Shown here piece after piece: positions 8,197-14,394 of a DNA stretch of 64,000 nucleotides. Source of the DNA: Oikopleura dioica. Its lineage: Eukaryota > Animalia > Chordata. The notes under the pieces were generated by a model. It had not been told where the DNA came from and did not search any database. It was given only the letters and a program-made list of their open reading frames with translations. Within the stretch, counting starts at the first letter, position 1. Each line of letters starts with the position of its first letter. Location of the stretch: NCBI GenBank assembly GCA_907165135.1, contig OU015567.1, positions 6,944,001 to 7,008,000 on the forward strand, in the 5' to 3' direction. A program made the translations under genes and the position numbers.

Positions 8197-8590
8197 GAAG
8201 AGAAAGATGTGGAATTGCGTGGAGGATCGAGTGGGAAACGACAAATACGGGGGAAGAGTGATTCGAAGAATCATTTTCGACGACATTTACGCCGATCGAA
8301 TCGCAGTTTTGAGTCAAAATCCAATTTCCAGAGCAGCTTATCCTCATCTAAAGGTACTGTAGCGCTAATAAATTGTCGTTTCCAACCTTTTTTTCAACCA
8401 GAGCGGCGACAAAGTGGTCTTCTACGACAACTGCGAAATCAAAGAAGGGAGCTTTCTTCTCTCATCCGAGCAGAAATCCACTTATCTCAACCCAAAAACA
8501 ATCATCGGCGAAGTTTTATCGACAGAAGAAGAGATCAGAAACTTCTGCAAATCGCATGGAATCGCCAAGAACGCACAAAGTTTACACACG
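8197..8590 (+). CDS. Hypothetical protein fragment
   Basis: Two joinable exons MWNCVEDRVGNDKYGGRVIRRIIFDDIYADRIAVLSQNPISRAAYPHLK / SGDKVVFYDNCEIKEG... Ends uncertain. Confidence 0.3.
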
Positions 8591-8743
8591 TAAGTTGAAG
8601 TTTATCAAAAATGAAATGAATAGAAAGCGAGAAAGCCGCAAGCTTTTCTTCGTTTTTTTTTTCAAGCGAAAGTATCAAAAATCGGATGACTTTCAATTCG
8701 TTTTAGTCTGGTGATCGAAGCTTATTTATTCCTGGAACGAAAA

Positions 8744-9421
8744 ATGAGCAGCGCGCGAGAAGCCCACTTCCCAGATAATACTGGTTCACGGATGAGCAGC
8801 CCGATGAGCCGAAAGCGTCCAGCGCCCGTGATGAACGAACAGCTGGCGCAGGCGAAAGCTTCGCGGATTCTCAATGCGATGGGCTTTCCCAATCCGGCTT
8901 TGGCTGTCTCTCCTCTTTCATCTGCTCCAAACTTGTCACCAATCGCGCTCCAAGCGCAACAACTCGCTCTTCAGCAACAAATTTCTTCAAAAAACAAAGA
9001 AGAAAACGATGAAACTCAAACGAAAAAAGCTAAAAACGAAGCCGAATCGATCGAGGTAAGATTAACCCGTCTTAGAGAGGGTTAACCCAGGGACAGAAAT
9101 AAACCCATTTCTTCAAGCCCAAATCCCCTGAAAAGCAAGCTGCAAGTGAAGACTCAAATTCAATGGACATTCAGGCAAATTCCCAAATTGAAAATAACAC
9201 TGAAGCAGGTATGAAGCGACCTTTTTTGTTCATCTCTATTTTTTTTTTTGCAGAAATCTCAGAAATTGAAATAAAAACGGAACCAACTGGAGGAGAAATC
9301 GCCGTCGTCGAACTCGAAGAAAATAACGACGATAATCTTCCTCTCGATCAACTTCCAGGGCCGAGCAATACAAACAACGTCTTTCAAAATCCCTCCGACT
9401 TCCAGCTTCCTAACAACCAAT
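8744..9421 (+). CDS. Common N-terminal exons of a modular DNA-binding protein locus
   Basis: MSSAREAHF...MSRKRPAP (NLS-like), Q-rich and acidic segments, IKTE. Three GT-AG exons, the last ending in a phase-1 donor at 9421/9422. Confidence 0.7.
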
Positions 9422-9692
9422 GTAAGTTCTTTTTTAGTTCTCCTTGGTTTTTATTCAAGAGGGAGCATCTTTGCTCGGCTGTGAAAAAAAGCCTAAGTCA
9501 GGGACTTGAAAGAGCTTCAACTAAAAGCTGCGAGGCGGCTTTTCGAAAAAACGAAGCCGCAAAGCGGCTTCGCCAAAGTTAGCATCTCGATTCTACACGG
9601 TTTTTCGTTAAAGATTTTACGGGACCCTGACTCAGGTTTTCAACACAGGTTTCCGAGCCATGGGGAGTATTTTTTCTAAAGAAAGTCTTCAG

Positions 9693-10244
9693 TTGTATTC
9701 GACAAGCATGAAATGTCGACCGAAGGAAAGCCCTCTTTGAATGATATCGTGCTCAATAAAGTGGTCCGACACGATAAAGGAAACAAGTTTCCAATTATAA
9801 CTTTTCACGTGAGCATCAGCGGGAAAGAGTATCAATACCTAATTCGCCGGGCGGGCAGGGGTTCCATCCATATTCGATGCAGGAAGGAAAGGGACTGTCG
9901 AGCGGGGCTCAGGTCGGGTTGGAAAAGTCCTCCTTTTTCGCCTCTTTTGGTCGGCTTTTTGACCGCTTTTGGTCATTTTTCAACCTTTGAAAAGACTCTA
10001 TTGCCCAGCGCTGATTTACCAAAACCCGGATTCGGAAAAATTCAAAAACGCCAAGTTTAAATTCGATCGAAACCACCCACTAGTCGAGGACTTGTCGGCC
10101 TATCGAATCGCCCAAGCCGCCCCTGAAATGATTCAGGAGCATACTTGTCCTCTTGAAGTTCATGAAACTTGGCAAGTTAATTATGAGCTTCCGACCATTC
10201 AAATTCAGCAAGAAGACGAAGACTCTTTTCATATTCATAACTGA
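9693..10244 (+). CDS. Alternative terminal module A: FLYWCH/WRKY-GCM1-like zinc finger
   Basis: Phase-1 acceptor at 9692. YQYLIRRAGRGSIHIRCRKERDCRAGL-RLYC...QEHTC (C-x4-C...H-x-C). Own stop at 10244. Confidence 0.6.
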
Positions 10245-10335
10245 AAATCATTTTTTGACAAAATTGCATCTTACCCATTTATTTTTCCATCAAAAATCCC
10301 ATTTCAGAAAAAGCAACTCAATATTTTTCTTTCAG

Positions 10336-10514
10336 TATCTCGGAATGGAGTCTTCCCAAACGTCCCCGTATCCGACCAAAACGATCCTGCCTCGCAGCAC
10401 TGGGCATTGATGCAAATGAGCGGCTTAACCATCCAAAACGGACTTCAACAACTGGCCAATACGCAGAACAGTAGAACTCCACCTAGACAATCTTCAAAGA
10501 CCTACTCGACCAAG
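10336..10514 (+). CDS. Linker exon B (phase 1 in, phase 0 out)
   Basis: Open only as SRNGVFPNVPVSDQNDPASQHWALMQMSG...KTYSTK, between a TTTCAG acceptor and a GTAAG donor. Confidence 0.6.
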
Positions 10515-10812
10515 GTAAGATCCTAAAAGCTCGTTTTTCGGAACATTTTGGTGAAAGTGGTCTATTTTTAATGAATGAGAGCTTCATATATAAATTCATA
10601 ATCATACTGTGATTCTGATTTCAGAGTGACTTATTTTCGCGGAAACTCGAGATCGGACAGTCACTCTGGAATCAGAATCGCGGTAATTTAATATGGCATT
10701 TGTATGCATCTTTGCGAGTTTTTCCTTGCATCTTGTCTGTAACGCAAAAAATGGGCCTCATCCACAAAAAAAGTAGTCACGTTCCATCCGAAACGTAATA
10801 TTTTCCGTTCAG

Positions 10813-11239
10813 GTCGCGAAAAATAGACCCGATGGACCAACTACTTGGAGGCCTGTTGTGTACGACAAGATGGAGCAAAAGCTCGCGGAAATGCGCGAAG
10901 AGGGCATGACCATTGACGGCATTGAAGCAGAATATACCCAAGCAGATCTCCCCACGGGGTACATTCGCTGCGTCGGCCCTTGTCGGAATAAAAACGCGCC
11001 CATGTTGTCCCACACCGGCACCGGCAACGAAGTCAAACTTAAATTATTCAACGGTGAATATTTTTATTTCTTCCTCAATCCATAAAAATCTAGTGCGCCG
11101 TCACGTGATGCGCTATCACAATCCGAACTGGAGGCCGGGGGAGCGAGGGAATACCGACAATCCCCAAAATTATCATTTGAGCATCGCTACTGCTAATACT
11201 GCCAATCCAAAAGAATACATGCAAATGCCATATTATTAA
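10813..11239 (+). CDS. Alternative terminal module D: BED-like zinc finger
   Basis: Phase-0 acceptor. GYIRCVGPC...GTGNEVKLKLFNVRRHVMRYH (C-x3-C...H-x4-H). Own stop. Confidence 0.62.
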
Positions 11240-11315
11240 ATTGTTGTCAAAAATGCAATAATCTGAAAGCTCCTTATTTATAGTTTTTTTAATGAGCTGA
11301 AACTGGTTTAATTAG

Positions 11316-11685
11316 AGGCAGACTAATAAAGCGAGGGATGAGGATCCGGACGCTACGTACGAGCCGTTAGTGGTCGAGAAAGTAAAGCGCAAAGTGCGAG
11401 AGTGGAGTAGCAAGGGGTACACGATCGAGGGATTTGAAGGCGAGTTCAAGAACGGCGAAGCGACAGGGTACGCGCGCTGCGTTGGCGAGTGCAACCAGCC
11501 CGGTCTCCTGGTCAAAGTGACCGGCTCGGGCACTGCGCTGAATATTTGGAGACGTAAGTCTTAATCTTTCTTATTTCGCGATATATAGAATTCCAAATAT
11601 TTATCTCATTTTCTCTAATTTAGTCGTCCAGCACATAAAACGGAGACATGCGCCGCCGCATCCCATGCCCATGCTTGAACAATGA
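11316..11685 (+). CDS. Alternative terminal module E: BED-like zinc finger (paralog of D)
   Basis: Phase-0 acceptor with no ATG. GYARCVGEC...GSGTALNIWRLVQHIKRRH. Own stop at 11683-11685. Confidence 0.62.
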
Positions 11686-11910
11686 ACTTTTATCATTTAT
11701 CTTCTTCTTCCAAGAAAGCTCAGAACTCAAATCCGACAAATATTTGAAATATTCCTTTTTCCGCTCTTCACTTCAATTCACAAAAATGCCTTCCCTCATT
11801 TTCCGAAACAATAATTTTATTTGCAATAAAGAAAAATCAAATTTAAAATCTTCTCGATTGTAATATTGAAGCATTTTAACCAAATTGAATTCATGGATTC
11901 CTTTTTTCAG

Positions 11911-12465
11911 TTGACGGATGAACAACGAATCGATATCATTAAAATCTTCGTGTTGCAGAAAACTTCGAAGGCGCAGCTCGGCAGAATGTACGGGGTCTCG
12001 GACGTTTCAATCCACAAAGTCATCAAGAACAAAGAAAAATGGATCGTCCGGGCGCTCAACAAGCTTCGTAACGACGACCCTGATAACGAAGACGAGCGGC
12101 AGCTGCTTGGAAGACTTTTGGAACAAGCGATGATCGAGCAAAATCAAGCTCGCTTGGAGCAAACCAAAGCGAGTCAGATTCAAGGGCCTAGCAACAATCC
12201 TCGATTATATCCGCAAGTTGCCGCCGGTCCCTCTCAACTAGCAATCGGAAGTGGGTCTCAAATTGTCCCTGGAAGAGTGGCAAGTGATCCATTGGATCCG
12301 AACAATCAGCGAACTTCTTTAAATTTGGACATGAGCTTCGCCAGGTCTCCCTATTTCGATCAACCAAGTGGCTTTGCTTCCACTGGACAGCGAATCGTTC
12401 AAGACGGATTTCCAGCTGGAGAGTTGCCTCCAACGATGAAAGTAGAAGTGCTCGAAGAAAATTGA
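11911..12465 (+). CDS. Alternative terminal module F: psq/CENP-B-type HTH
   Basis: Phase-0 acceptor TTTTCAG. LTDEQRIDIIKIFVLQKTSKAQLGRMYGVSDVSIHKVIKNKEKW. Stop at 12465 with AATAAA downstream. Confidence 0.68.
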   Translation: MTDEQRIDIIKIFVLQKTSKAQLGRMYGVSDVSIHKVIKNKEKWIVRALNKLRNDDPDNEDERQLLGRLLEQAMIEQNQARLEQTKASQIQGPSNNPRLYPQVAAGPSQLAIGSGSQIVPGRVASDPLDPNNQRTSLNLDMSFARSPYFDQPSGFASTGQRIVQDGFPAGELPPTMKVEVLEEN

Positions 12466-12638
12466 ATGATCACCAATCACCTTTAAACTATGCCGATTAA
12501 AACTGCCTTATTACATGTTTCAAAGTAAAAGATAAATAAAATTTTTCCGTCGAAGAGAATCTGTGTGTCTTTGTCGATGTTTATAAAGCGTGAAATTGAT
12601 ATTGGTAACTCTCAAACTGTAGCTTTTAGAAAAACGTT

Positions 12639-14394
12639 ATGAGTTCTTCCGACGAGTCATCTGATGAAGATAATTATATTTTGTTCAAAAATCGAGAAGG
12701 GACTGGTTATATTTTATCGCTGACTCGGAGAATCGCAAGTTTTATAATTCAATAAAGTCTTGTCAGAATTAAATTTTGTTGGATTATTCATTTTAAATAT
12801 TTGAACGGTTTACTTTCGTCGAAACTAACTACTTTCGGCTTTCATTTTCTATCGATTCTAGAGCTCAATTTGTTATTTTTGAAAACCTAAAAAAGAGTGG
12901 CGAGACATAACACCGCTAAACCCAGAGGACAATTTCGAACATGAAGTTGTCCGAATCGCCTATTCCGAAGACTTCAAGGATTGTTTCGACTATTTCCGAG
13001 CTATTTGCGAAAAGGAAGAATATTCGCAGCGCGCTTTAGAGCTCACCGAAGAATGCATCAAAAGAAATCACGCGAATTATTCGGTTTGGGAATATAGAAG
13101 GCGCATTTTGAAGAAACTTGGGAAGAAACTCGAGCCGGAGTATGAGTACACTCAAAAAATGCTCAAAAGACACATCAAAAACTTTCAAATTTGGCATCAT
13201 AGGTGAGCGAATATTGGGATTAATTTAATTATAGACAAAGAAGCCGCTTGCGGCTTCGAATAGGAGAGAAAGTGAGCCGCTTTTTTCATCTTGAAATATG
13301 ACTTTTTATGAATCAAAAGAAAACCAAGAAGCCGCGTGCGGCTTCGAGCTGGAAAAGACGAGAAAGCCGCTCAAAGCGCGGCTTAAGTTTTCTTCCACTC
13401 TAATCCGCGAGCGGCTTCTCGATTATAAGTTGATTCACAAAAAGTCGTGGTTTCTGTCGTTTGGAGAAGGAATTTTAAATCGCCCTAGAAGTCGGTTTGT
13501 TTTCGGAGATAACGAGCGTTGAAGGCGATATTTATACGATTTGACGGGTATAATCTTTCATTTTTGCGCTTTAGGCAGGTCCTCTGCGAATGGGCAAACG
13601 ATGGCTCGCGGGAGAAAGCGATGACGGAACTGATTTTCAAGCAGGATCAGAAGAACTACCACGCCTGGCAGCACCGACAGTGGGTTGTCAAACGCTTTGG
13701 GCTTTTTGAAGGAGAGATTGATTTTGCCAGAGAGTTGCTGGTAAAAGACGTGTACAACAACTCGGCGTGGAATCACTTGTACTTTTGTATTCAAAACTCG
13801 ACTGGCTGGAGCGAAGAAATCAGAAAGGTAAAGAAAATTTAAAAACTTCCGAGAAGGCTACTCCTAGAAGCTAAGAGTTCCATTCAGAGCGAACTTTCCT
13901 TTGTCCAAGAAAAGCTAGAAGTCGCTATTGACAATGAATGCGCGTGGAACTATCTGCGAGCCGTTCAAAACCACATTCTCACCGCTAATCCACGTAACTA
14001 TCTACACTTTTTCTGAAATAGAGACTCTTGTTCAGAGTTGGCGGACAAGTTTGTGAGCAAACTTGAAGTAATTGAGGACAGGGGAAATTCGCACAAGCAT
14101 TTGGCCGCGTACGTCGCCGATTATTTAGCAGAAAAGACGGAAAGGGATAGTGATAAAGAATCGGGAACCAAGGCGGTTCAAATTTATACAGTAAGTTAAA
14201 AAAAATAAATGTTCATTTACATTTTTCTTTTGCAATTTTTGACGTCCGTGACATTTTCCATGATGTCATAACTTTGCGTCATTTACGGAGATGAACTAAA
14301 GTAACCCTTCTTTTAGGAATTATCCTCCAATTTGGACCCTGTGAGGCGAAATTACTGGAACTATCTCTCCTCCTGCCTCTCCGCCAAAATTTGA
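12639..14394 (+). CDS. FNTA: Protein farnesyltransferase/geranylgeranyltransferase-I alpha subunit
   Basis: VVRIAYSEDFKDCFDYFRAI, SQRALELT, NYSVWEYRR, KNFQIWHHR, KNYHAWQHRQWVV, NNSAWN, NECAWNYLR, DPVRRNYW. Confidence 0.95.
13238..13425. repeat. GAAGCCGC-TT-GCGGCTTC hairpin repeat family (FNTA intron copy)
   Basis: The same hairpins recur at about 9525-9570, 32935, 41222-41272, 42665-42855 and 44418-44480, apparently all intronic or non-coding. Confidence 0.75.

Follow-up and report, generated by a model that had tools for sequence, protein, structure and literature searches.

The closest described counterparts of the locus reported here are two Drosophila genes, lola and mod(mdg4), and a group of genes built on domesticated transposase domains (ZBED, CENP-B/pogo-derived, PGBD and FLYWCH1), each of which stands alone and carries one domain. 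In lola, common 5′ coding exons that encode a BTB/POZ domain are spliced to one of many 3′ exon groups, each with its own stop codon and a nucleic-acid-binding C2H2 finger of one type, so that a single scaffold acquires many specificities. In mod(mdg4), a common N-terminal part with a BTB domain is combined with more than 30 alternative C-terminal exons, most of which encode a FLYWCH finger, a domain class shared with transposases. One report (PMC13490949) describes mod(mdg4) isoforms as arising by trans-splicing of separately transcribed 3′ exons. Here we describe a locus of the chordate Oikopleura dioica, contained in a 64,000-nucleotide (nt) stretch of contig OU015567.1 (assembly GCA_907165135.1, positions 6,944,001–7,008,000, forward strand; hereafter the window, in whose numbering positions are given). 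The locus is probably a single gene in which common 5′ exons are joined to optional alternative C-terminal modules, the N-terminal part being spliced either to a module A or to a linker exon B, and B in turn to a module C, D or E.

Organization of the locus

The gene spans 8207–12465 on the forward strand and was compared with at least three other lineages: the Bergen/Genoscope type (genomic contigs L001, L016 and L017), L010 and L018 and, for module E, L019. Its five common exons, 943 nt together, end in phase 1 and are predicted to encode an N-terminal domain of about 110 amino acids (aa), a conserved stretch resembling a nuclear localization signal and an acidic linker:

8207–8353, + strand: exon 1 (u1), with a conserved start codon and the first half of the N-terminal domain; assigned on 94–96% protein identity with relatives and on its joining to the next exons in the metatranscriptome contig L008 (protein P0007) and in the annotated O. 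dioica protein P0006
8402–8589, + strand: exon 2 (u2), second half of the N-terminal domain; ratio of non-synonymous to synonymous substitution rates (dN/dS) about 0.05
8707–9055, + strand: exon 3 (c1), containing a previously presumed start at 8744 and a conserved RKRPAPVMNEQLAQAKASRILNAMGFP stretch
9118–9208, + strand: exon 4 (c2), acidic low-complexity linker, placed by its open-frame solution; the orthologous exon is spliced in the mRNA contigs L007, L008 and L009
9254–9421, + strand: exon 5 (c3), last common exon, with a phase-1 donor whose orthologue is spliced to B in three mRNA contigs

A preliminary description of the locus, made from the letters of the window, had recognized the last three of these exons (as 8744–9055, 9118–9208 and 9254–9421), which form a single open frame with a phase-1 end at 9421; a single splice solution yields an open frame for c1. 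That description placed the N-terminus at 8744. This codon is Ile in relatives and is therefore not a conserved start; the actual start lies 537 nt further upstream, at 8207, and adds two exons. About 110 further N-terminal residues head both P0006 and the L008 product P0007, and these residues correspond to 8207–8353 plus 8402–8589, spliced onto 8707–9055. Since u2 and c1 are one uninterrupted exon in L001, L010 and L017, u2 is part of the same open reading frame (ORF). The intron at 8590–8706 (116 nt, GT–AG) is confined to the lineage of the window, the same three contigs reading through it, and is a recent gain there. An exhaustive representative-set protein search with c1 returned P0006 as its sole match.

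Downstream of the common exons lie the linker and the modules, with two polyadenylation (poly(A)) signals:

9693–9912, + strand: module A exon 1 (A1), with a phase-1 acceptor kept in L001 and L010; strands and a C-x5-C motif
9995–10244, + strand: module A exon 2 (A2), with a conserved EHTC (H-x-C) and a stop that is TGA in all lineages
10336–10514, + strand: linker exon B, 179 nt, entered in phase 1 and left in phase 0
10813–11053, + strand: module C exon 1 (C1), with a phase-0 acceptor and C-x3-C; 86–90% identity to relatives, dN/dS 0.06–0.07
11094–11239, + strand: module C exon 2, with H-x4-H and stop
11316–11553, + strand: module D exon 1 (D1), with a phase-0 acceptor, no Met and C-x3-C; 88% identity to relatives
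11624–11685, + strand: module D exon 2 (D2), with H-x4-H and stop; its splice is supported by RNA reads and is also present in L007 and L009
11825–11830, + strand: AATAAA after D, conserved in L001, L010 and L017
11911–12465, + strand: module E, with a phase-0 acceptor, a helix-turn-helix followed by a less conserved tail, and stop
12535–12540, + strand: AATAAA after E

The acceptors ending at 9692 (A) and 10335 (B) are in phase 1 and continue the common frame, and those ending at 10812 (C), 11315 (D) and 11910 (E) open phase-0 frames; the modules end in separate stops, at 10244 (A), 11239 (C), 11685 (D) and 12465 (E). These phases and stops, like the missing starts discussed below, lie exactly where the preliminary description had put them. 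By chance, five acceptors would all be in the needed phase about once in 250 times (~(1/3)^5 = 0.004), and the donor and acceptor phases are unchanged in at least three lineages that have reached synonymous saturation relative to the window. With u1 and u2 included, all four isoform models are open and carry one terminal stop each; writing N for the common part, the predicted proteins are N-A (470 aa), N-B-C (502 aa), N-B-D (473 aa) and N-B-E (558 aa). Modules A, C and D are each split by a short internal intron (9913–9994, 11054–11093 and 11554–11623, respectively) that separates a Cys pair from a His pair, so that the metal-ligand motif is divided between two exons. For A, the joint between the two exons was set by the intron-free L010 orthologue, in which ...CRAGLR at the end of the first part is followed directly by L.CP... 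of the second.

Two introns around module A have features of their own. The intron between c3 and A holds imperfect 39-nt inverted repeats (74% complementary) flanking 75 nt, at 9488–9640, and measures 271 nt in the window versus about 95 nt in relatives; because of the repeats and the added length, the segment looks like an insertion resembling a miniature inverted-repeat transposable element. The internal intron of A is missing in L010. In L001 (1455–1730) it has 17-nt inverted repeats just inside its ends and begins with CT instead of GT, its position being set by the intron-free orthologue, and it may be a transposon-derived, non-canonical intron.

Transcript evidence for splicing

Three spliced mRNA contigs were found, all from sister O. 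dioica lineages and not from that of the window. L009, a JGI contig, joins c1-c2-c3-B-D1-D2 and continues into the 3′ untranslated region (UTR) of D, skipping A, C and X, the last being a module present in relatives (see below); it matches the Genoscope scaffold FN653019.1 (L017) at 98–100% in six blocks, with GT–AG at every joint. L007, a Logan contig from run SRR5123517, contains the joints of L009 within one 354-aa ORF. L008 joins u1-u2-c1-c2-c3-B and then enters the intron behind B. From the splices in these contigs it follows that the orthologues of 9421>10336 (c3 to B) and 10514>11316 (B to D) are real, and to this extent the arrangement of one N-terminus with alternative terminal exons, as first described, is borne out.

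L007 also shows a second use of module D. In this contig a donor within the D 3′ UTR is spliced to the acceptor of E (L007 1075–1120, versus L001 3870–4005), and the GT–AG interval thereby removed contains the AATAAA of D. Module D is thus usable either as a terminal exon, in L009, or as an internal exon, in L007; the window is without a GT at the place homologous to the L007 donor. RNA reads from a sister lineage cover 9869–9909 and continue into A2 sequence with the internal intron of A removed, and others join 11553 to about 11624–11629, with the internal intron of D removed, which places modules A and D in processed RNA.

An apparent read-through from A to B in the predicted protein P0009 (L010 8567–9178) was rejected. 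The 'W' on which it depends is the TGA stop of module A read under genetic code 4, and the fusion is an artefact of the code-4 gene caller applied to metagenome and Logan contigs.

Conservation of the modules and their frames

The order u1-u2-c1-c3-A-B-C-D-E is colinear in L001, L010, L016 and L017, and the phases are kept along with it, so that the architecture proves conserved in relatives, a check called for when the locus was first described. Wherever it could be computed, dN/dS against the window is 0.04–0.26, with synonymous sites saturated or nearly so (dS about 1 where it is not saturated); between L001 and L010 it is 0.03–0.35 for the main exons. Across four or five lineages the modules contain no internal stops or frameshifts. 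Judged by these substitution patterns, with dN/dS of 0.04–0.35 throughout, every module is under purifying selection.

The distribution of potential start codons indicates how the modules would be translated. Met is missing from module D in every lineage. In E, the first Met falls within the helix-turn-helix; in six lineages no ATG stands ahead of that motif, and residues 1–50 of E are nearly invariant among these six. In the first 25 codons of E, all of which precede the first Met, we counted 12 synonymous changes (16.5 sites) and 6 non-synonymous changes (58.5 sites). Since E is constrained ahead of its first Met, it is translated from an upstream exon, and the nearest phase-0 donor upstream is that of B. 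These data support the conclusion that D and E, and A in two of three lineages, are unable to start their own translation. The joining of one tail, D, is proven by mRNA; taking together the phase fit, the lack of usable starts and the purifying selection, we regard the use of the junctions c3 to A, B to C and B to E as strongly implied.

Most of this coding sequence is absent from the existing annotation. In the Genoscope gene set, model P0006 connects c3 with the A exon via an AG located 10 nt too far upstream and is hence out of frame in A, where it meets a stop after 24 codons. The remaining 3.3 kb with A to E, up to the gene for a protein prenyltransferase alpha-subunit repeat protein, are unannotated (L017 8001–9409; GCA_000209535.1, FN653019.1), so that this gene set lacks about 3 kb of constrained coding sequence, and the only model that it has in the region finishes out of frame. 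The prenyltransferase-type neighbour begins at 12639 in the window, on the same strand and about 170 nt past the stop of E, and is kept in all relatives.

A further module in related lineages

The interval between B and C is about 650 nt in the Bergen-type and L010 lineages versus 298 nt in the window. Within the longer interval lies module X, an exon of 70–72 aa that has a phase-0 acceptor, ends in a stop of its own and, in the Bergen type, is followed directly by AATAAA. X is absent from the whole 64-kb window; its presence in relatives means that the module array differs among cryptic species. The ligands of X are arranged as C-x2-C-x13-C-x2-C-x4-C-x2-H-x9-C-x2-C, in the order C5HC2. The cysteine-rich domain of the piggyBac transposase is a cross-brace of the form C-x2-C-x11-C-x2-C-x4-C-x2-H-x4-C-x2-C that binds specific DNA (PMC5861402). 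Against the piggyBac domain structures 5LME and 6X67, phmmer gave E = 0.024–0.028 for X, and a three-sequence profile only E = 0.31. The resemblance of X to the piggyBac cysteine-rich domain is suggestive. It is also where the earlier description of the tails as transposon-derived finds its support, of an indirect kind. Modules compared with transposons elsewhere in the window showed no significant similarity.

Domain identity

Module E is the only one with a Pfam hit. Its classical helix-turn-helix motif can be aligned with the P22 C2 repressor (E = 0.3), and its match to PF04218 (CENP-B_N) is borderline (E = 8.6e-4; E = 2.4e-3 for an orthologue), the score of 19.3 bits lying below the gathering cut-off of 21.2. 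E is a helix-turn-helix module, for which psq/CENP-B, as first proposed, is a candidate family.

Modules C and D are paralogues, with about 35% identity, and the window accordingly holds three unlike domain types, metal- or helix-based, and not the four different DNA-binding domains originally counted; X brings a further type in relatives. They share the pattern C-x3-C-x23-H-x4-H with a BED-like helix (G.G....L..[IL]....H....H). Their designation as BED-like did not gain from profile searches: zf-BED (PF02892; C-x2-C-x(n)-H-x(3-5)-H) gave no match in spliced D at E≤5, the Cys spacing differs, and the one supporting observation, a language-model (Atlas) feature lead toward BED clusters at 0.80, is weak. 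Module A, for which a FLYWCH-like identity had been suggested, has conserved strands, C-x5-C and, about 53 residues later, H-x-C, with no Trp, a ligand spacing different from that of the FLYWCH pattern tested (W-x-C-x(6-12)-C-x(17-22)-H-x-H). In its intron-free L010 form it matched no Pfam family, FLYWCH and related models included, at E≤5, and no PDB entry; PDB sequence and profile searches with A and with D returned no match, nor did an Rfam scan. Binding to DNA is a predicted property of the modules.

No other part of the protein is as conserved as the N-terminal domain (87–96% identity, dN/dS about 0.05). No BTB domain was found in P0006 or P0007 by Pfam at E≤1, in agreement with the original remark that none could be seen, and neither Pfam nor PDB (sequence and profile) gave any match to this domain. 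Its language-model neighbours in Atlas all belong to OB-fold families (Rep-A_N, OB_Ssb-like and POT1, at 0.82–0.87). The domain is not BTB and is possibly OB-like, a weak lead.

Alternative explanations

Several results weigh against the use of alternative tails. The junctions c3 to A (9421>9693), B to C (10514>10813), B to E (10514>11911) and B to X were found in no read or contig, the search comprising a metagenome scan with B, RNA read mapping and protein searches that used as query E, the common part plus B, or A plus B. The protein searches returned genomic ORFs and three D-type or unspliced mRNA contigs only, and the metagenome scan two known mRNA contigs and one genomic contig. RNA runs labelled with the species name derive from a divergent lineage, so that 1–15 reads per run map at a level of at least 90%, none reaching the upstream junctions; this divergence fits the cryptic species that have been described within O. 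dioica (PMC11067885). The L007 contig has E behind the stop of D, as 3′ UTR. Neither AATAAA nor ATTAAA occurs behind module A in any lineage, and behind C such a hexamer is found in L010 alone. A and C could in principle be translated on their own: an in-frame ATG lies close to the beginning of A in the window (9713) and immediately ahead of the A acceptor in the Bergen type, with none in L010, and C has a conserved Met at residue 20. As to function, Pfam scans of all pieces, with modules spliced or intron-free, gave nothing above threshold. The AlphaFold models rest on shallow alignments, with a predicted local distance difference test (pLDDT) score of 51 for D, on which Foldseek returned noise, and of 44 for the N-terminal domain, which makes the latter model unusable.

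Much of this would be expected if only the N-B-D protein were made, and A, C and E were nested or downstream cistrons with their own, possibly non-AUG, starts, or exon sequence of the 3′ UTR. Beyond B, each of the three mRNA contigs either continues to D or halts in the intron that follows B, and the L007 arrangement, the possible starts in A and C and the missing hexamers after them agree with such a gene. We nevertheless consider this explanation unlikely. Constraint on E as a protein sets in at its first codon, ahead of any ATG; the ATGs of A lie at non-homologous places; the residues of C that precede Met20 are conserved and can be aligned with D; and the phase fit of all acceptors is conserved. 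Moreover, a working acceptor that has a free donor upstream of it would undergo cis-splicing.

The modules could also be separate genes of an operon, to each of whose acceptors a spliced leader is added. O. dioica makes wide use of operons and of spliced-leader trans-splicing, and the spacers between the modules are short. On the other side, D is without any Met and E without one ahead of its DNA-binding helix; to our knowledge, the spliced leader supplies no ATG. D, in addition, is cis-spliced to B in mRNA. We regard an operon of this kind as very improbable. That A, C and E are decaying transposon remnants in introns and the 3′ region, with D the real tail and the phase fit coincidental, deserves hardly any credence: the Genoscope annotation calls none of the three and mobile-element debris does occur in the introns, but the selection data (dN/dS far below 1 in every module over saturated-dS divergences, and the first 25 codons of E) already largely refute it, and the intact frames, the identity of C1 at the protein level and the near-invariance of the start of E also speak against it.

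Proposed mechanism

In the single gene with optional alternative C-terminal modules, which we favour, one pre-mRNA would be made, and the c3 donor would pick one of two phase-1 acceptors, leading either to A, a Cys/His module with its own stop, or to linker B. The phase-0 donor of B would then pick C, D or E, and in sister lineages also X. Downstream of D and of E, every lineage has a canonical poly(A) hexamer; one is also present behind X in the Bergen type and behind C in L010 only, and the spacer is 70–91 nt after A in all lineages and 76–199 nt after C. Given this distribution of hexamers and the short spacers behind A and C, the choice would be made mainly at the acceptors. The mRNAs containing A or C probably end at the downstream poly(A) site of D or E, with the later exons as 3′ UTR, for which the D–E arrangement of L007 may serve as a model. 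Through such splicing, the tail could direct one nuclear scaffold to various DNA sites or partners.

Comparison with known systems

Viewed against the loci named at the outset, a broader scenario can be put forward tentatively, as one that we regard as possible though short of probable: a chordate may independently have built a locus in the style of lola and mod(mdg4) on a non-BTB scaffold, with tails captured from several transposon superfamilies (a pogo-like helix-turn-helix, a piggyBac cysteine-rich domain, two BED-like modules and a WRKY/FLYWCH-like module) and with modules still being gained and lost between cryptic O. dioica species. We know of no lola-like domain-swapping transcription-factor locus outside arthropods. 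If its tails are truly used, the present locus would thus be the first of which we are aware, and it would do without BTB. It would then follow that the multiplication of DNA specificities by tail swapping evolved more than once, and that an array of this kind can be fed by the capture, as exons, of DNA-binding domains from transposases, as X, present in some cryptic species only, would illustrate.

The genes with domesticated transposase domains offer the nearest likenesses for individual tails, E being similar to CENP-B_N/psq, X to piggyBac, and C and D having a BED-like helix. In contrast to those stand-alone genes with one domain each, several domains are arrayed here as putative alternative tails, A, C and D as candidate members. 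With mod(mdg4) the locus shares a common N-terminal part and alternative C-terminal exons. It differs in that its modules lie on the same strand and in order, that the B-to-D junction is compatible with plain cis-splicing and that A has no detectable FLYWCH finger. With lola it shares common 5′ coding exons followed by 3′ exon groups that each have their own stop, whereas the N-terminal domain is non-BTB, the tails are unlike one another, and only about four to five tails would be selected in two tiers, from c3 to A or B and from B to C, D or E. The locus appears to work like lola or mod(mdg4), from a position outside that BTB family.

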